DNA of 64,000 nt from Trichosphaerium sp. ATCC 40318. Lineage: Eukaryota; Protista; Tubulinea. Position numbers and translations under genes: made by a program. The stretch lies in assembly GCA_038496445.1 (NCBI GenBank), contig JALMLS010000466.1, forward strand, positions 124,001-188,000, written 5' to 3'. The notes below the pieces were generated by a model. It had not been told where the DNA came from. It searched no databases and was given only the letters and a program-made list of their open reading frames with translations. How positions within the stretch are numbered: the stretch's first letter is position 1; every line of letters starts with the position of its first letter. This document shows positions 41,630 to 55,357 of the stretch, one piece after another.

Positions 41630-41805
41630 CCAGTGCTTCCTAGGTTTGGAGATTAATCCAACGTGAAAAAACTTCAAGTTTTGATTTTCCTTATGGATTT
41701 GAGTGGATTCTATGCTAAATTTGAGTGAAATTCCCCAGAAATTTGAAGAATTTTGGCGAACACCGAAATCAAACTCATAAAATACAAACAACGAACACAG
41801 CAAAT

Positions 41806-42510
41806 ATGAACGACTTTTACACATCTTTCTTTGGCAGACCTTCCTTCGGTGATCACCCAAGCAACTACATACGCAGGCAATCAAACTTCGATCCCTTTTG
41901 GGATGTGCCCAGACAACCAAGACGACGCGCTTACGCTGTTGATCCATTTACTGGCGAACCTGTTTACGCGCGTAGACGACAATATGAAGATTCTGTAGAC
42001 GAACGAGAAGCTTACAGACAAGCACAAGAAGCAGCTTTACAACGTAAACAAGAAGCTATTAGAAGGCGTAAAGAAGCTTTAAAGCGTCAAAAAGCCGAGG
42101 AAGAAAGGAAACGGGCAATTGCGCTACAACGTTATGAGCAAGCCGCTACTACTATTCAATCTACTTTCAGAGGTTGGCAAACGCGTAGAAAGAATATTTT
42201 AGAGCAGTTGAAGACACTCCGCGATATATCCGATAACGCAAACTCTATTGTTGATAAATACGCTGAAGACTTACTCAGAGTGGAGGAAATAGCGGAACAA
42301 GAGAAATCAATTGAAAATCTATCAAAACGAGACTTGTTGTTACCTAGAGCATTTGAAGAAGAGCTATTGAAACAATTGTTCAGATTAGATGCTATTCAGA
42401 CATTTGGTTGTCCTTTATTACGTAATAGAAGAAAAGAAATTGTTTCTGAATTACAACGGATTTTATCGGATAATGATAGGATTAAAAAGTTGCTTAGTTC
42501 ATTGCAATGA
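41806..42510 (+). CDS. IQ-motif plus BAG-domain co-chaperone (intronless)
   Basis: IQ AATTIQSTFRGWQTRR; BAG EEELLKQLFRLDAI..LRNRRKEIVSELQ. Confidence 0.85.
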   Translation: MNDFYTSFFGRPSFGDHPSNYIRRQSNFDPFWDVPRQPRRRAYAVDPFTGEPVYARRRQYEDSVDEREAYRQAQEAALQRKQEAIRRRKEALKRQKAEEERKRAIALQRYEQAATTIQSTFRGWQTRRKNILEQLKTLRDISDNANSIVDKYAEDLLRVEEIAEQEKSIENLSKRDLLLPRAFEEELLKQLFRLDAIQTFGCPLLRNRRKEIVSELQRILSDNDRIKKLLSSLQ

Positions 42511-42987: not shown

Positions 42988-45900
42988 ATGAACATAGTGG
43001 CGCCTATACTACAGGTAATTCGTTACACCTGTTTTTACTTAAACGAAACAAAAGGCTGCAGGGAATGTCTCCGCTAAGTCTCAGAGTCGATATAATCGCT
43101 CAGAAGGTACTCTGCCTATAAGTAAAGCTGTAGAACTGCAAACTGAGCTGTAAGTAACTAATTTACTAATTACACGACTAAATATGCCTCTGGCGCGCTT
43201 AACTACGCGTAGTATGCGTAGAAATACAATTTTGAGCTTTTACATGTTTCTACTGAGATTAACGCTGCACAAGGTCACAACAACGAGATACAATATGGAG
43301 AGCAATAAAAGAAGGCGACCAACAAAAAGTTGAAGAGCTTGCAGAGCAGAATTTCGAGTAACTTTGTCTGTTTTTTTTTTCAAAGACTAACTTTGTTTGT
43401 AGTGTACTTGGCGTGCGAGTATGTATTGCAAAATTTTAGGTTACCAACACTTACGTATAATACAGGGGTTTGTAGGAGAGACACCTATTCACTTAAGCTT
43501 TTTATACGGTGCGCACATGTTCGACAATGAAATGACTTCTTTGTTTTTTTGAAATGGCATTTTCGCTCAAAGATGGAGTTCCACTCACGTTCAACAAGTA
43601 ACTCTGTTTTAGAGCAAAAAGAAATATGCAAAAGCCTATTGATTAAATATCCGAGTATCATAAATGATAGCTTCACTGGAGTACATTATCGTGGAGAGAA
43701 CTGTCTACATATTGCAATTGTAAAGAAAGACTTTGAGATGGTACAGTTTCTTGTTAAAAGAAGTGGCACACTACTTCGAGGTCGAGCTACTGGAGACTTC
43801 TTTCATATTGGAAAACCATGTTACTATGGGGAGGTATGTTGTAGTAGAATGTAGTCAAGTTGTTAACGGTCATGTGGGATGTTGTGTATCAACCTTTGGT
43901 AACAAATGTATAATCACTCATAGCATTCCATTGTGGTTGACAAATCATTGCAGTATTAGGGACCATACAACTTGGCTTGTATATAATTTTTGACTACATC
44001 ATTCTGGAGCTAACTGTTACTTTGTCTAGTATCCGCTTTTTTTCGCAGCATGCACTAATCAAACGAAAATTGTAAAGTACCTTGTTTATGAAGGAGCGGA
44101 TCTTATGGCTGTAGATTCTCATGGAAATAATATTCTTCATTTAATTGTAATGAATGAGTTAGATGACATGTATGAATTTGTTGATGAGTTACTCAAGCGA
44201 CGACGTGAAACACTAGCAATAGTACACTAACATGTTATTGAGAGTAGCCCGTAATGCCATTTAGACAGACTCATATGTGCCGCTAGATAAGAGAAGAAAT
44301 AAGGAAGACATGACGCCAATGCAGCTTGCAGCAAAAAACGGTTAGCGAGACAACTGGATGAAAGGTCGATTAATGTTGTTTAATAGGTTGTAAGAAGATG
44401 TTTAGTTTTCTTCTTGAGAGAAAGCGGAAAGTTGAATGGGCGTATGGTCCTGTAACATGCTATAAGTATCCTATGGAGGATATCGATACACCCTATGACA
44501 AAAACGAGCGAGGTAAACTTGTTTTAGACGAATCACATCTTCTTCAATGTTGATGACTTGCAGCTTATTTGAGGTATTTTTTAGGTGCTTTACAGTATAT
44601 GGTACAAAATGAAAGATCAGAATTAATAATGATACCAATTATTAACGACCTACTCAAAAAGAAATGGGACACGTAAGATTTAAGACATTTTTCTTATTTT
44701 TTTCTCCTTTTTAGAAAAGTTGTTAGTTACTTGAGGTCTTTGTTTACTAGTACAATATCTCAGTATTTTAACATATTGTAGAATTGTTGGTAACATGTTT
44801 GTTAAACGATTTTTGCTCACGTTGTTATATCTCGTAATTGTACGCCCTTCCCTGGTCTTTTGTTGAGTAGTAATTCTATTTTTTACAGTTTTCTTGTGCT
44901 CTTATTCTACGTGGTTCTTTTAAAGATGGTGAAAGCGCCGTAGAACAAAGTAAACTTATTCAGTGGATCACGTACTTTAGATTTGCGATGGAGGGTGTGC
45001 TAAATTAGGTAGATGCTTTTTGGAGGGATTGGTAGTCGCTGGAGCGGTGTTCAAAGGTTTGTTTGAGACAAACGAAATGATAGCGGACGGATTTGGTACG
45101 TATAAAAACCCGAAGAAGAGCTTTGTGCTAATGTGCTAAATCCATAAGGTAACTATTGGTTACGTCCTGGCGCTTGGTTTCTCGGTAAGTTGTCTTACCT
45201 GGGCTAATATATAAACATCTTTTCTTGTCGTAGAAAATGCATTGAGCACTATGTACTGTGTTTCTATTGTATTTGTTGTGGTGCCTCTTCGTTTATTTGA
45301 CAATGACTATGAAGATGCTGCACGTATGGTATCAGCTATACTCGTTTGGTCTTATTTGTATGTCCAAGTTAAATTGGCATTAGATGGTTGTTGTTTAACT
45401 TGTTTCTTAGATTATTCTTCTTTTTGGGATACCAACTCACTGGTCCTTTTGTTGTCATGTTGTATAAGATGCTGAAATCTGGTTAGTCAGTAGTTTGTTC
45501 CTTTTGTTGATAAGGAATAGATATTTTACGATTCTCTGTTATCTTTGGAGTCTTCCTTTTAGGATTTTCTCAAGGTATGATTGTTTGGCTTTTTTTAATA
45601 TTGTCCTCATCCTTAATGTTTGTAGCATTCTTCTTGGCTTGTGGTGAATCTGGTTTTGTCCAATATGGTACCCGATTGAAACTAAGCATAATGGCTATGT
45701 TGGTACTACACTGGAGGCATTTATTGCGTATATCAATATCGTTTGTTTAGGGAGTATTTGAGGCTGATGAGTATGTTGAAAGCAAGTTCCCTATGTTGTC
45801 TGGTAAGAATTACAATACTCAAAAGGTTTCTAAGTTTCCTAGTATCACTACTGCTAGTGTACATTGTAGTAGTCTCGATATTGCTTCTAAATATGCTGAT

Positions 45901-46774
45901 CGCTATGATGGGTGATACATATACAAATGTCATTGGTGACGCTGATATTCAGTGGCATCTAGAGGTGACTAGATTTCGTTGTTTATTTCTTTCCTATTTT
46001 TTTTGTTTTGCTTTACGAAAACTAAGTTTTGTAGTGGGCTCGCATCATTCTTAGTTTGGAGAATGAGCTTAGTGTTGATGAGAGAAGACTTATAGACAAT
46101 CAATATTGGACTCCTATTGATGGAAAGCCGTACTTATTAGTACAAGAGATAAACAATGACTACTATCATGATGCACACAACGAAAAGGACGATGAGGCTC
46201 TTACTGCGACTGATAAAATGAATTCAAATTCTGAAACCAAAACCCAAAATCTTCAAACAACCAAACCAGATTTACAAAGATCGTAAGCACCAGTGTAGTC
46301 TTTTCTTTGGCTATATTTATTTATTTGAAAAAATCAAGGAAGACACAGTCTCTGAGAGCAAAAAAGAAGAAGAAGAAAGTGAAGTTGAGAAGAGAAGTTT
46401 CATTACCTCCTTTTTTTGGCAGTCCGTACGCCATTGATAGTCACGTGGTGTTTCTAAACAATGATTCAGGGAAAAGCAACGTAGAGTGGTAAAACCGAAG
46501 ACGAAAAGTAAGCCTAAGCTGGTGCAACAACAATCCATAATTCCTCCTTTGGAACAAACGTAAGTTTTTGTTGTTTATATTAAATCATGACAACATAAGG
46601 AAAACGCAAACTCCTAGAAGAAATCCAAAGAGAAAAGTAAATGTGATTAGACAACATGCTTTAAATACACTGGAGAGACGGTAACTTGCTCTTTTTTTTT
46701 TAGATTCCTTACTTAACTATTCAAGGGAACCACGTGTCCGAAAAAGAAATCCAGAAAAGAACGAAACAAAGTGA
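42988..46774 (+). CDS. TRPV-like ankyrin-repeat cation channel (start uncertain)
   Basis: YRGENCLHIAI; ATGDFF..CYYGEYPLFFAAC; DSHGNNILH; WAYGPVTC; LLKKKW; LTGPFVVML; ILLLNMLIAMMGDTY..QWHLEWAR; basic C-terminal exons at 46.3-46.8 kb splice in frame. Confidence 0.88.
43834..44029 (+). other. Highly structured 196-nt intron with Sm-site-like motif
   Basis: ATGTAGTCAA/TTGACTACAT stem; TGGGATGTTGTG/CATAGCATTCCA stem with G-U pairs; GTCAAGTTGT/ACAACTTGGC; AATTTTTG at 43985-43992. Confidence 0.5.
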
Positions 46775-46914
46775 GAAACAAATATTGGAATGGTAGTATT
46801 GTACTTGTTGAGTTATTGTAAAGAGCACAATCTAAGCATAAAAGCAAATAAAGAAAACCGGCATTCTCTGTCATTTCAAACAATAAGGTTTTATTGAACA
46901 AACATTTTACCTTT

Positions 46915-48195
46915 TTATTTATCTTCTATTTGAGGCTCTTTTTCTACTTTACATTTACCACCTTTGTCAACCATGAATGTTTTAATTCGTTCTATAGAAT
47001 CATGTAGCACAGATTGAGCTTCTTTTGGATCAGTAGATACCATATCAAGTGTATACAAAGGTGCTGCTTTATAGCATATCTATAAATTGTATGAGCAAAA
47101 AATAAGCTGCAAACAAATAGTGTAGTAGCCGCTACCGTACATTTATTCTATCATTATCTAGACCTTGTTTAAGAGCTTCTTTTATAATATCAACACCACG
47201 AATATCATAGCTTGTAAGAGATAGCTCAGCAACATACTAACAATTTGATAAGTATGAACAAAGACGCCTATAAAAATATATTACCTTGCGCTCTGTCTTA
47301 CGAAGGCGACGAGTTATCTCTGCCTCGAAGTCTTTCTTGAAAGATGGCTCGAGTTCCAGTGTATCTAGAGCGTTGCTAGCAAAATGCATAAGCTAAAAGA
47401 TAGTGTACGAGGCAATACCTTTTTCCTTGAGCTATTTGATCAAATGCATCGTAAACTCCATCTTCGGACTGCTCGTGTATAGGCCACGCTATTTCTTGGT
47501 ATAATTCAATGAGGGGTTTGTGACATACAGCAGACATGCGATTCAAGATGTTGTGAACCTGGAGGTAAGTCAGAGAGTCAAAATGGCAGTGAGAGAAGAT
47601 AGCAAACGCTTACAGCTCTGGACTTATTATAAATATCGATGCACTCTTCTTTCTCTTCAGGAGTAACATCACGCCTTGTCACGTGAACATAACCTCTGTC
47701 TATAGTAAAAAAACTTAGGACGTTATTGGATCTCATAATAGGGCTTTATAGGTCACGTACGGGTTTCAACAGATGTTACTTTGCAAACATAGTTTTGTCC
47801 TATTCTCAGAATCTAAATATATGAATGTTATTGATGTACTTTCAGAATAGAATTTCTATTTGGTTGTGGACAAAGGATATAGTTAAATCATGCGTGTGGG
47901 TACCTTGTGCAGTGATTTTTTTGTTATTTTACGAGCAATCTCTTTAATTGAGATGTAACATACTACACTGTTATACTAATACGTTGTAAGTGCGTATACA
48001 GTGGTTTTACTCCAAATTACCTCTAATAATTTCCCTTGAGCGCCGCTTTCGTCTACTTCGGCTATTTTAACCATCACTAACTCGTCTACTTCTATACAGA
48101 GATGATTAGGCTCGTTGATGCTAATTAAGCATACCAGGCAATTCTGCCTCGTAGAAACGGCATTCTCCTGGTGTAAATGACTCTTTTGTTGTCAT
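46915..48195 (-). CDS. Divergent full-length eIF2-alpha-like protein (Ser51 equivalent is Ala)
   Basis: CRFYEAELPEVDELVMV; LLEYN; LRIG; RGYVHVTRRDV; IAWP..YDAF; GVDIIKEAL; AAPLY. Confidence 0.88.
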
Positions 48196-48539
48196 AGTTG
48201 CAATAATTAATGAAATTTACTGTAAGTGATGTTTACGTAAACGGCTTTTAGTTCAGCGAAGCAATTAAGTGGGAAAAAAGTAAGAAACTACATTAGCCAC
48301 TGTTAATCTTTTTGAATTTGACGCTTCTTGAGAAAATAAAGAAAAAAAGCCATCACACTGGTTGATACCAAACCAGGTAAAGAGACGCTACCACCTGGAG
48401 GTTTTTTCGTGATTTTATTGCGAAGGTAAACCGTGATAACCACTACACCAAGACGGGTCGCAAGCAAAATGTCAAAAAAAGCAAGAAATCCAGAAAGTGT
48501 CAATAATACAATTTATTTCATGTTTCTTAGATTAATCTA

Positions 48540-50752
48540 TCATGGGCACTTACGGTCAACCATTGATTTACCGTATTCGTTATACTCAACCTTTGACATC
48601 CACATTTGCTGGAAAGACCCAAGGGAAGCTAGTATAGAACCTCCTATAGAGCAAAACATTTACAAACAATAAAATTTAGAAAAGGGTAAGTACCTATCCA
48701 TACGCTGAATCGGCATTCTGTAGAAGAAGGAGAAACAACCTTAAGCTTCACGCCACGCTGTGAATAAAGTTAACAAATTACTTCTAAAGAGGTTTAAGCT
48801 TCACGTACACTAGTGTTTACAAGTGCTTGTAGCTCATTTGTAAGACGCTGTGCAAAACCATTATGCAAGCTGTTACCACCTAAGTATTAAAGTAAGCATG
48901 ATGCTGTAAGTACATCTCAAAAATCTAACCTGATACAATGACGTTATTAAAAAGTTGCATGCGTAGATCATTATCACAACTTAGAATTGCTTTGTAAGCC
49001 AATTGATGTACACCAACCTGAAAAAAAGTTTAGTGCTTTTTTTTTTGTTGACTTTTCTTACGCTATCAGAAGGTAGCTCCATGTGTCGTTTATCAACAAG
49101 TCCTGGGTTGAACATAAGTTCTGGGAGCTTGTATCTATCCAGAGCGACTGTTATGATATTTTTATCAGGTAACTCGTATTTCACTGGTGATAAATGTTGA
49201 ATTCTAAAGCACGTGTCAATAACATTGCATTAAAACCAAAAAAAAATTCCTTATTTTCTTGAAAAAGTTTCTTCGCGTTGCTTACTGTTGGTTAAGTGTT
49301 GTAAGCATTGTTTGGCATGTACTAGCTTTCATATCGTCCATAAGACGCTATTAAGAAGAACGTTATTATATAAACAAAGGAACTGTTAAGAAGAGTACGT
49401 ACTCTGACTTGGTAGTCATGATAAGACTTTGTACCCAATTTATCGCTTAAAGTGACATTGTAGTTGCCTATAGAAATCTCCTTTTTGCTTTAACATTACA
49501 TTAGATGATGCGTTAACATGTATTGTATATCTGTACCTAACAAGGTAGCTAGGATTAACCTTAACTTTAAGATCTTCAACCATTTTGTAGTAAATGTCAG
49601 ATAACGAATTTCCAGCCAATGGCATTTTATACGAGTCTAAAAAGCTATGTTAACACGATACATGTGCCCACAAAAATACAGTCAATAATTAAACACGTAC
49701 TTTTGGTTAAAGCGAAACCATCATGAACTGGTACAACTATAGACAAGTGTCAATCATACAACAAAAAAGTCAAGCAAAAAAAAAAAAGTTTGGACAAAAA
49801 AAGTGTACCTGATGTTGTCCCTGCACCAGAATCGACAACTAGTGCTGTATCTATCCATTGTTAATATAAAAAAATACCTACAATAGAGAGTCATAAAATA
49901 GAATCATCAGAAAAGTATATGTCGTACGTTGTGATGTAGGAAAGAAAGAACACACCTTTGCCAAAAGCGAATCTGGTTTTTTGAGTTAAGAATTATTTGG
50001 TTTTTCAGTTTAGATAATGATCTACAAGTTAAAAAGAATAGGATACGCTGTGAGGACAGAGTTTTTGGAGATAAATAGAGCAGGAGATTCAAATTTCTCA
50101 AAGAATAGCTCGCACATGCGCTCTCGGCGATCTTTATCATTCCAAGTGGACTAGGAGGTTGTTTAGATCCAGGTAATAAAATGCGCCGTTTTTTAAATTA
50201 TTGAATTATAAAACCGCTCAAAACGCGTGTTTCTTTGCTCACAGCGATCTTCGTACCTCAGCCAGCAGAATTGGCGTTTCTTTAGGGTCCACTTGTAGAC
50301 ATTGCAAAGAATGATCCCAGAGCTTCTCAGCAACTTCCCAATCATCAACTACTACGTTCAGTATTGCACAGACGCGTGGAAACGCACTTAATCCATCTTT
50401 TAGAGGTTGTTTGATTTCTAGTCGCTGCCTGGTCTCCTCGTTGATACCAGAAAGGCTGCTGAAGCCCATGTAGTATGTTTTATCTGCTTTCTTCCCACCA
50501 TCAATATCCATGGCATTTTCGCCTACAGTGCCACTGGCACTCGGTAGGCCTTCTAGAATACCAATGCTCTGTTCGTTATTAAATTGTACATAATTAAAAA
50601 GTGTTCATACGCTAGGGAGCACGTATTTAGGCGAATCCTCGCCAGCATAGCCAATCTTAGTTTCAACCGTTCCAACGTCAATTACGACAGCGCCAACGTC
50701 GTCTATATCGCGATTAATTAGGTAAATACAACATACTTGTACCTCCTAGCAT
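48540..50752 (-). CDS. ARP4: Nuclear actin-related protein Arp4/BAF53
   Basis: [22 protein letters not shown]; ELFFEKF; ALVVDSG; YELPD; [24 protein letters not shown]. Confidence 0.9.
49973..50046 (-). other. U12-type (minor) GT-AG intron in ARP4
   Basis: 5' GTATCCTAT; branch TTCTTAAC ending 12 nt before the 3' end; A-rich with no pyrimidine tract; removal restores VLTA|FAFGK. Confidence 0.75.
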
Positions 50753-52431: not shown

Positions 52432-53704
52432 TTAATGTTGTTCAGTGTTGGCTCTAATATCTGCCAACAACTTAGATGCTCCTTCTTTTGCCAGTTGATT
52501 TGCTAGGTTTTTGCCTATATCAGCTGCTTTTTCTATTTGACCTTGTAATTCTCCAGTAAATGCCTTTATTAAAGTTAATAAGTATTCAACATTTTTTGTA
52601 CAAAAAAATCGAATCTGGGCTAAGTTCGTTGCTTACTTGTTTTCCGTCTAGGGAGAGTACGATTCCCTTGAGTGTAATGGTATTTTTTTCTTTATCTAGT
52701 TTAGTCTCACATCCAATTGGTACCTACACACCGAGATAAACATAAAGCACATTGATAAATTAATGTCTTAAATAAGTTCTAACCTGACAACCGCCTTCAA
52801 GTGTCAGTAAAAATGATCGCTCAGCAGCGCATCTTGCTGCTGTTTCTTCACAATGAATATTCTTTAATAGAGCGTGAATGGCTTCATCACCCTCTTTACA
52901 CTCAATACCAAGAGCGCCCTAGGCAAATAAGTACAAATCCAGCCTATAGTTAACTCACCTGACCAGGAGCATGTAAAATTTCATCCAAATTATGAGTTAT
53001 TCTACAACTATATTCCTCTCCCATACGTTCAAGTCCAGCACGTGCCAATACAATAGCATGGTAATCTTGTTCGTCTAATTTTTTAATACGTGTTCCCACG
53101 TTACCTCTGATATCCTAAACGATATAAATGACGTGACATTAACATCATGAGAGGGTGATTACTTTAAATTCTAAGTGGGGATACAATCGTTTAAGTTGAG
53201 CGATTCTACGCAAACTACTGGTGCCAATGATGGATCCTTTAGGTAAATCTTTAATGTGTTTGTGTGTAGAGTCTTTTTTCATTACTACAACATCTTTTGG
53301 TGACGCTCTAGGTGGAATACAACCAACTGTCAATCCTTCAGTACAATTAGTCTAAAAGTACGCTAATGGGCACTAGAACGCACCAGGCGGAAGTACTGTT
53401 GGAAGATCTTTGAGGGAGTGCACAGCGAATCCAACACTTCCTGCGAGAATACTAGCCTCCAATTCAGCGGTAAATAAGCCCTTACCACCTGAAACTTGAT
53501 CAGATAATCGCTAAAATAGTTATAGCGCTTACCTATGGCAGACAACGCCTTATTTAATACTTGATCGCCCTTGGTTGTCATTTTAACAACTTTAAACTCG
53601 CTTGATGGTAATTTTTCTTTTAACATGGCTATAACGCGGTGAGTCTGCACCAGCGCTAGTGGAGACATTCTACTCGCGATATTTACTACCCCTTGTTCGG
53701 ACAT
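52432..53704 (-). CDS. hemC: Porphobilinogen deaminase
   Basis: [13 protein letters not shown]; GLFTAELE; [10 protein letters not shown]; GTSSLRR; IRGNVGTR; APGQGALG; AERSFL..LEGGCQVPIG. Confidence 0.96.
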
Positions 53705-54292: not shown

Positions 54293-55357
54293 TTAGGATA
54301 AGCGTCTATTGAAATCTATTTTTCTTGCAGCTGCCTTTACCTCTGCAGGACTGGCACCATGCCTATCAACAAATTTATGATCACTTTGTTCAAAGAAGGG
54401 AACAATAAACTCCATATGATTCATCCGACTTTTCTCATCCTTGAACAAATCATAGTCTTTGCGTATTTTATCATAGTAATTTAGTCTTCTTTTTCGTTTC
54501 AAAGTATCCATTCTGAGACGTAAAACGAGATAGCATATGACGACAAATTCTTTGAAATCAAGTAACCCAACGTCAGTACGTTGAGACATTGGGTTAATAC
54601 CAATAAACTGTCTGGTTTCATAATATGTTCGATTCATAAAAAACATTGGCCCTGCGCAATTGTTATTGTTTACTACGGTCATGAGCAACATATTAACATA
54701 GTATCCATCTGATTCTTCCACAATACCATCACGGAGTGTACAGAGTTCACTAATACACCACAAAAATAGTCGTGATATTATTGATAAATATCCTTTTTTC
54801 CCATTGACATCTTCTTTTAAGCTGTAAACAACCTCGGCCATAGCAAACTCCTCCTTCAGATTTGCAGGTATATTTGTAGGTGACCGTATACCTTGATCAA
54901 CCAGACGAGAGTAACAAAGCTCTTTCAAAGTAGGAAAGGGCACAGTCAATTCCACAGCTTCGGAAGCATTCTCACTTTTTCTAAAATCACACCCTACTAT
55001 TTCGTAATCGTAGATTGCGTCTAAAGTGGCACGTGCCACCGTCAATTTTTCTCCAACTTCGTTATTACGGTCTGTGCATAGGCTTAGTATCGTCCGCGTT
55101 AGTAAGCTGAAAGAGGCCACTTGCGAGACGTGCTTCAAGCTTGAAAGCTCTTCTAATATAAGACTATCGCTCAGCTCTTTTGTGTATCTTTCGACAATGC
55201 CATGGGAGCCACTGATTGCCTCAATTGTTTCGTATAAACGGTTGGTAAAAATAATATCTCTCGGTTCTAATTCACCGTTTATTTGCGCTTGTTTGCCCGT
55301 AGCAATATTGATAAGTGCTTGAGCGCATTTGAGAGCGTGTGGGTTTTTAGCGTTCAT
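54293..55357 (-). CDS. Intronless 354-aa protein with internal SOCS-box-like motif
   Basis: Uninterrupted 1065-bp ORF; FPTLKELCYSRLV..IPANLKEEF. Confidence 0.75.
   Translation of the reverse strand: MNAKNPHALKCAQALINIATGKQAQINGELEPRDIIFTNRLYETIEAISGSHGIVERYTKELSDSLILEELSSLKHVSQVASFSLLTRTILSLCTDRNNEVGEKLTVARATLDAIYDYEIVGCDFRKSENASEAVELTVPFPTLKELCYSRLVDQGIRSPTNIPANLKEEFAMAEVVYSLKEDVNGKKGYLSIISRLFLWCISELCTLRDGIVEESDGYYVNMLLMTVVNNNNCAGPMFFMNRTYYETRQFIGINPMSQRTDVGLLDFKEFVVICYLVLRLRMDTLKRKRRLNYYDKIRKDYDLFKDEKSRMNHMEFIVPFFEQSDHKFVDRHGASPAEVKAAARKIDFNRRLS

Follow-up and report, generated by a model that had tools for sequence, protein, structure and literature searches.

An expressed, hyper-divergent eIF2-alpha-like gene in the amoeba Trichosphaerium with alanine at the position of Ser51

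The integrated stress response has a single conserved input, the phosphorylation of eIF2-alpha at Ser51, and this residue lies in a loop that is near invariant across eukaryotes. To our knowledge, non-phosphorylatable versions of the protein exist just as engineered alleles and viral mimics, and literature searches did not reveal a natural example among cellular genes. The DNA analysed here (a 64-kb stretch of contig JALMLS010000466.1 of Trichosphaerium sp. ATCC 40318, called the window below) contains an eIF2-alpha-like gene on the minus strand at 46915–48195, in which an alanine codon lies at the place of Ser51. Does the cell therefore possess an eIF2-alpha that the stress kinases cannot address, and what might such a protein do?

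The gene is complete. The model rebuilt from the window sequence has nine exons and eight GT–AG introns (43, 45, 91, 61, 55, 43, 48 and 61 nt, in order), with a coding sequence of 834 nt for a protein of 277 amino acids (31.8 kDa, pI 5.65). The protein comprises three domains, i.e. an S1 barrel, a helical domain and an alpha–beta domain 3. Three features of canonical eIF2-alpha are all absent: the Ser51 phospho-acceptor, the KGYID motif and the acidic C-terminal tail.

The phospho-loop is encoded by exon 3 (47904–47975), which reads YNSVVCYISIKEIARKITKKSLHK. Ala58 (codon GCT, 47934–47936) is located under Ser51 and Lys55 (codon AAA, 47943–47945) under Ser48 in three independent alignments, two made with a local MAFFT and one with MAFFT as a tool. 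The first contained the canonical set, the second the viral homologues as well, and the third the individual exon pieces together with six canonical proteins; in the last of these most pieces were placed correctly, the exceptions being that of exon 7 and the ends of a few others. An alignment of the exon pieces on one scaffold misplaced them and was rejected. Within three residues of Ala58 there is no serine or threonine, and the canonical RRRI-RS corresponds to RKITKKS, with one residue inserted after Arg-Lys-Ile. The chain then continues into exon 4 (47761–47812), which reads ILRIGQNYVCKVTSVET.

The KGYID motif is a common interface for the eIF2-alpha kinases, eIF2B-alpha and uS11, while the phospho-regulatory contact to eIF2B is made by arginines around the serine (10.1101/501411). 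In the amoeba protein the motif is replaced by RGYVH (47683–47697, in exon 5), with the changes Lys79Arg, Ile82Val and Asp83His; the glycine and tyrosine are retained, and over a longer stretch RGYVHVTRRD aligns with canonical KGYIDLSKRR. Met44 is changed to tyrosine, and SGAQG stands where the canonical protein has MGAYV, in exon 2 (48021–48091) where the S1 domain starts. The protein ends with ...EKEPQIEDK, ∼35 residues short of the canonical ends, so that the acidic tail is missing. Engineered S51A alleles (yeast SUI2-S51A and the mouse knock-in) carry the identical substitution at the phospho-acceptor, and with them eIF2 no longer responds to any of the four stress kinases; these are single changes in a canonical protein, whereas the amoeba gene is natural and carries dozens more changes on those surfaces. 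It would thus appear to encode a natural, cellular, non-phosphorylatable and hyper-divergent eIF2-alpha, and one would expect such a protein to be out of reach of the integrated stress response.

The gene is expressed. Logan contigs from four public runs were mapped on 46800–48300, three of them (X1–X3) from one sample of 2023 and the fourth (X4) from a separate study of 2015. Taken together, the X1–X3 contigs agree with the model to the base at all eight junctions (CT..AC on the plus strand). The X4 contigs cover the 3′ part only, with introns 7 and 8 removed and no differences. The contigs of X2 and X3 are cDNA, since the SMART template-switch adaptor forms loose ends on them; the adaptor (CCCGTACTCTGCGTTGATAC) is joined at 48218 in X2, and also ends contigs of X3. 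As the X1 contig extends to 48223, the 5′ end of the mRNA lies near 48218–48223, giving a 5′ untranslated region at 48196–48223 that contains no upstream ATG and is followed by the adaptor. The presence of this adaptor in the X2 and X3 Logan contigs (window 48092–48223) is also a case of adaptor contamination of assemblies. At the other end of the gene, AATAAA (46919–46914) overlaps the stop codon TAA (46917–46915), and the short 3′ untranslated region (the feature with its signal spans 46888–46919, minus strand) is covered by an X1 cDNA contig that reaches 46888.

The mRNA carries GCT at the alanine codon: the contigs of X2 and X3 cover exon 3 and have 0 differences there, although contigs cannot exclude rare variants. 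The single read variant of the gene, 47321 T>A in exon 7 (47285–47375), is synonymous (Ala179, GCA>GCT). The gene is therefore transcribed and correctly spliced, with the alanine codon present in the mRNA. That the reading frame is intact despite the divergence, and that the only variant is synonymous, is evidence against a pseudogene.

How closely is the protein related to eIF2-alpha? Metagenome contigs were scanned with the back-translated canonical loop, giving 119 loci from which 32 full-length canonical eIF2-alpha open reading frames were kept. All 32 proteins match the amoeba protein over residues 6–274 (phmmer, E from 1.5e-45 to 6e-28), far beyond chance. The identity is 28–33% by blastp and 28.0–32.9% in the MAFFT alignment, compared with 43.5–94.5% (median 53%) among the canonical proteins. 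From 54 near-invariant columns (≥94% conserved in the canonical set) it keeps 22, or 18 of 40 when the columns used for fishing are left out. The S1 domain has lost most relative conservation (36% versus 80% in the canonical set), while the values are 29% versus 46% for the helical domain and 26% versus 48% for domain 3. The markers of the fold are kept (Gly30, Ala31, Gly80, Tyr81, Trp135, Gly202, Pro231, Tyr233 and Gly265).

The likeness to canonical eIF2-alpha (EIF2S1, yeast SUI2) lies in the order of the three domains and the collinearity over residues 6–274, in the N-terminus CRFYE..PEV, the Gly-Tyr of the docking motif, GVDxIKEAL and APLY in domain 3, and two intron positions held in common. 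The N-terminus, of eIF2-alpha type (CRFYE..LPE), is encoded by exon 1 (48135–48195), which runs from Met1 to the first base of codon 21. Set against these likenesses are Ser51Ala, Ser48Lys, the rewritten loop, RGYVHVTRRD, SGAQG, the missing tail and an identity of ∼30%. Taken exon by exon the signal is faint. The exon pieces (24–54 aa) match Pfam and solved structures weakly, and the loop exon by itself did not find eIF2-alpha. Pieces of 32–46 aa match PF07541 with E values of 3.6e-4 (exon 8, 47141–47236) and 0.04, both below the gathering score, and no exon piece is significant in Pfam for the S1 family. Exon 5 (47614–47699) matches residues 79–105 of human eIF2-alpha in solved structures (E 0.04, 27 aligned residues), and pieces from domain 3 match domain 3 of both eIF2-alpha and archaeal aIF2-alpha. 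Both components of the eIF2-alpha/aIF2-alpha superfamily are thus present, i.e. the S1 domain (PF00575) and the helical and alpha–beta domains (EIF_2_alpha, PF07541). Judged by its sequence, the protein is a hyper-divergent eIF2-alpha homologue rather than canonical eIF2-alpha with a point change.

An earlier note, made from the letters of the window, had described a full-length eIF2-alpha with a natural Ser51-to-Ala change. The substitution stands, together with Ser48Lys, on all three alignments, and the replacement of KGYID by RGYVH is borne out in the same way. The three domains that it reported are present in the alignment over residues 6–274, and the cDNA junctions agree with its intact splice sites. 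It understated the divergence, however, given an identity of only ∼30% and the lack of an acidic tail. It had named a serine codon in the reads, or a lack of expression coupled with neutral evolution, as the findings that would speak against it; the mRNA has GCT, and the gene is expressed and spliced, which makes the observation stronger than first reported.

The reading that we favour is that the gene encodes an expressed, fast-evolving cellular paralogue that acts as a kinase-blind alternative alpha subunit and still binds eIF2-gamma; to this statement as a whole we give a rough probability of 0.45. In the proposed mechanism the loss of the phospho-acceptor (Ser51Ala, Ser48Lys), the rewriting of the arginine-rich loop, the change of the KGYID surface to RGYVH and the loss of the acidic tail would together remove the parts that serve the integrated stress response. 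Without them the protein cannot pass on the stress signal, and it probably docks poorly on the eIF2-alpha kinases. With the acceptor serine gone and the docking surface altered (Asp83His, Met44Tyr), we infer that it serves the kinases neither as a substrate nor as an effective decoy. Domain 3 would still join eIF2-gamma, and so create a minor pool of eIF2 that the stress kinases could not switch off, and whose contacts to eIF2B and the 40S subunit may differ as well. Most of the work would fall to a canonical copy that can be phosphorylated and is encoded elsewhere in the genome. The kinase-blind subunit is favoured because the frame and the fold markers have been kept through ∼4–5 substitutions per site and because domain 3 can still be recognised. 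That the protein is a paralogue, that it binds eIF2-gamma and that the kinases do not act on it are each inferred. It is a rather unlikely further step that this is a dedicated natural isoform of a free-living eukaryote, which assembles into eIF2 and keeps a stress-kinase-proof channel of translation open, or in a stronger version is the sole eIF2-alpha of an organism that has abandoned Ser51 control while retaining eIF2-alpha kinases.

A number of observations weigh against the favoured reading. A search for orthologues of the variant was negative: the 54-aa piece of exon 9 (46915–47079, which encodes the remainder of domain 3 and the stop codon) gave 0 matches at E ≤1e-3 in 1.84 billion cluster representatives, itself included, so that proteins of the host seem to be absent there. 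The S1 surface that contacts eIF2B, tRNA, mRNA and uS11 is heavily altered, and near-invariant residues of domain 3 are altered too (Arg190, Cys197, Ala205 and Leu227); one cannot therefore take it for granted that the protein works normally within eIF2. There is no second eIF2-alpha gene in the window, where a tblastn search with the 32 canonical proteins matched the gene at 46915–48195 only, and a canonical eIF2-alpha was not found in the part of the published gene table that was available (PMC10521059), which does not amount to a search of the genome. Lastly, the terminal branch that leads to the protein in a maximum-likelihood tree measures 4.84, the median being 0.28 (∼17-fold), and because of this long branch its position is unresolved; it falls with the cellular sequences and the viral homologue L120 in an unresolved fork.

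The changes in these surfaces could instead mean that the duplicate is no longer part of eIF2 at all, having either taken on a new role as an RNA-binding protein with an S1 domain or begun to drift under relaxed constraint. The alteration of 32 of the 54 near-invariant columns speaks for this, as does the fact that each domain is below canonical conservation. The lack of variant-type relatives, seen in the exon-9 search, points the same way. A word search with a profile of the six canonical rows and the exon pieces gave 7,881 proteins; none of the 120 matches listed is of the variant type (119 have SELSRRR and one SALSRRR), though relatives could lie hidden among the 7,881. Yet the gene has an intact frame of 277 codons in nine exons with eight canonical splice sites, and it is steadily expressed. 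It retains the fold markers, its sole variant is synonymous, and an unconstrained gene would be expected to carry stops or frameshifts after ∼4–5 substitutions per site. A role outside eIF2 is accordingly considered improbable, if the best of the alternatives. Among the matches listed from the word search, none is nearer to the window protein than ∼1e-47 save three of 447–556 aa. These three public ‘eIF2-alpha’ entries (P0001, P0002 and P0005) score far above those of normal length, which may reflect a tandem duplication or the fusion of gene models; the source of one of them gives it the name of an unrelated protein.

A second possibility is that the gene is the only eIF2-alpha of the amoeba, with Ser51-based control lost or rewired and the protein doing the whole job within eIF2. 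The two negative searches for a canonical copy, in the 64-kb window and in the available part of the gene table, are compatible with this, neither being a genome search, and so is the expression of the gene in two studies. In yeast, moreover, eIF2-alpha is the least essential subunit of eIF2. The exchange factor that senses the phosphorylation speaks for a different arrangement. In the part of the published gene table available, eIF2B-beta matches animal proteins with E 2.8e-117 (PMC10521059), and since this phospho-sensing factor is conserved a canonical substrate is to be expected. A substrate only ∼30% identical to the others, on a ∼17-fold longer branch, would be an odd partner for it, and a sole eIF2-alpha just 30% identical to all others would be extraordinary. 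We therefore regard a sole copy as distinctly unlikely; the window gene is probably a paralogue beside a canonical eIF2-alpha, and the label of paralogue in the earlier note seems plausible.

Equally doubtful is a cellular pseudosubstrate or decoy, which by analogy with viral proteins would bind the kinases or eIF2B and damp the stress response. Poxvirus K3L mimics the S1 domain of eIF2-alpha; it inhibits PKR as a pseudosubstrate and keeps KGYID (10.1101/501411). Ranavirus vIF2-alpha is homologous to all three domains of eIF2-alpha, and is likewise a PKR pseudosubstrate inhibitor and not a replacement for eIF2-alpha (PMC3068933). The amoeba protein resembles these proteins in an S1 domain without a phosphorylatable Ser51, it shares the three-domain layout with vIF2-alpha, and the acidic tail is absent as it is in giant-virus eIF2-alpha-like proteins. 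It differs in its cellular encoding and in the kinase-binding surface: K3L is an S1 domain only, with KGYID kept, whereas the amoeba protein is full length and has lost the aspartate of the motif; vIF2-alpha is viral and intronless, whereas the amoeba gene is cellular, with eight introns and an altered docking motif. The known decoys keep the surface centred upon KGYID (10.1101/501411), while the amoeba protein has RGYVH with Asp83His, and Met44 altered. Six viral homologues collected here also keep KGYID, though one of the two patterns used to fish for them was KGYID itself. The decoy function suggested in the earlier note by analogy with K3L and vIF2-alpha is thus weakened by the loss of the docking motif; the kinases of the host could have co-evolved with the protein, in which case RGYVH would be compatible with a decoy.

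The viral set was obtained by a profile scan of viral contigs, and its six eIF2-alpha-like genes are a small sample that was fished with canonical motifs. Four are giant-virus homologues of 219–307 aa (L120:2998–3654, L121:2998–3918, L122:2998–3795 and L123:3004–3804, all plus strand). They keep KGYIDLS, lack the acidic tail and have rewritten phospho-loops (e.g. LANASVRRKKKS and SELSNRE); L120 is missing part of the helical domain. The other two, on giant-virus contigs of 341 and 20 kb (L124:2989–3237 and L125:2950–3222, plus strand), encode S1-only eIF2-alpha mimics of 83 and 91 aa that keep EKGYIDLS, one with the loop SEFSRRP, in which the serine is kept, and the other with SEIYSRR. These two look like K3L-type proteins outside the poxviruses.

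Where did the amoeba gene come from? Its best scores are 147 bits with canonical eIF2-alpha, 75 bits with archaeal aIF2-alpha and 52 bits with the giant-virus homologues. Giant-virus homologues of the Mimiviridae/Klosneuvirinae type are like the amoeba protein in being full length or nearly so and tail-less, and in some rewritten phospho-loops (L120–L123). They are unlike it in keeping KGYIDLS and, in the sampled set, a serine at the Ser51 column, and they form no clade with it. At best they score 96 bits with canonical eIF2-alpha and 52 bits with the window protein, and so are nearer to the former. In the maximum-likelihood tree a branch with 98/93 support parts the viral clade L121–L123 from the rest, and a published phylogenetic study placed viral eIF2-alpha homologues as the sister group of those of eukaryotes (PMC11946776). 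Searches of the viral contigs with the exon-9 piece and with the canonical loop pattern both gave no match, and neither did two degenerate patterns running from LxEY to [KR]GY[IV][DH].

Archaeal aIF2-alpha is similar to the amoeba protein in having no regulatory serine circuit and no tail, and there is a local match in domain 3 (APLYTLDMVSTDPKEA versus APRYRVDVVGTNPKEA). An archaeal origin, suggested by this likeness in exon 9, was rejected. The scores against 36 aIF2-alpha proteins taken from genomes reach at most 75 bits, versus 147 bits with canonical eIF2-alpha, and in a quick tree with these as outgroup a branch with 100% support sets the archaea apart from the amoeba protein and the eukaryotes. 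Of the two sides of this split the window protein belongs to the eukaryotic one, within which its placement is unresolved.

The introns provide a further character. Those of 33 canonical genomic loci were mapped on one alignment. Intron 5 (phase 0, between ..KSRA and VHNIL.., directly upstream of exon 6 of the helical domain, 47419–47558) coincides in position and phase with an intron of canonical loci L016, L059, L060 and L105. Intron 8 (phase 0, directly upstream of exon 9) does so with one of L105. Intron 6 (phase 2), three residues from a phase-2 intron that is widespread, falls where the alignment is variable and was not counted as common. The chance of at least two exact matches among eight introns is ∼3%, a rough estimate based upon ∼30 canonical sites over ∼830 positions, and the shared introns are thus suggestive rather than conclusive evidence of cellular descent. 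L105 is a canonical eIF2-alpha gene on a metagenome contig with three short introns of 58–64 nt; of the 33 loci it has the exon–intron layout most like that of the window gene, with two introns exact and a third three residues away.

Acquisition from a giant virus followed by gain of introns deserves mention since Trichosphaerium has ∼1,581 virus-derived genes, with massive gene flow from Klosneuvirinae and other Mimiviridae, and ∼40% of these genes carry introns (PMC10521059), while giant viruses encode eIF2-alpha homologues that likewise lack the acidic tail. This origin is nonetheless very improbable, being disfavoured by the bit scores (147 cellular versus ≤52 for the six viral homologues), by the 98/93 branch that excludes L121–L123, by the two introns in common with cellular genes, by the host-type neighbours, and by viral contigs that hold neither an exon-9 relative nor a window-like motif, within a small viral sample baited with canonical motifs. 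As far as this sampling shows, the gene is eukaryotic, of cellular type and very fast evolving, and neither a viral nor an archaeal import.

On the favoured reading of a kinase-blind cellular paralogue, an expressed alanine copy whose docking surface has been rewritten would let nature show how eIF2-alpha behaves once the kinases and eIF2B-alpha no longer recognise it. If the protein enters eIF2 it defines a stress-proof channel of translation; if it does not, it represents a new use of the eIF2-alpha fold. Translation that is proof against the stress kinases, if true, might be kept up during transitions in the life cycle or under attack by giant viruses; the earlier note had suggested that the protein could sustain translation in stress or encystment. 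The host trades genes heavily with giant viruses that carry eIF2-alpha homologues, and a link to the conflict between virus and host over the shut-off of translation can be tested.

The neighbours of the gene are ordinary host-type genes. On the plus strand there are pieces of a gene with a BAG domain and an IQ motif (41725–42510), and of one with ankyrin repeats followed by an ion-transport domain in a TRP-like layout (43549–46054). On the minus strand there are an actin-family exon (50239–50511) and an exon of porphobilinogen deaminase (53363–53704). Beyond these lies an uninterrupted open reading frame of 354 aa on the same strand (54293–55357), which has no Pfam family and no relative in the viral contigs, and for which the gene collection contains no exact entry. 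Neither a tRNA nor an Rfam family was found in the 64-kb window. The G+C content of the window is 37.5%. The published Trichosphaerium genome has 37.69% G+C, 8.7 introns per gene and a mean intron length of 75 bp (PMC10521059), and the eight short introns of the eIF2-alpha-like gene and the composition of the window agree with these values.

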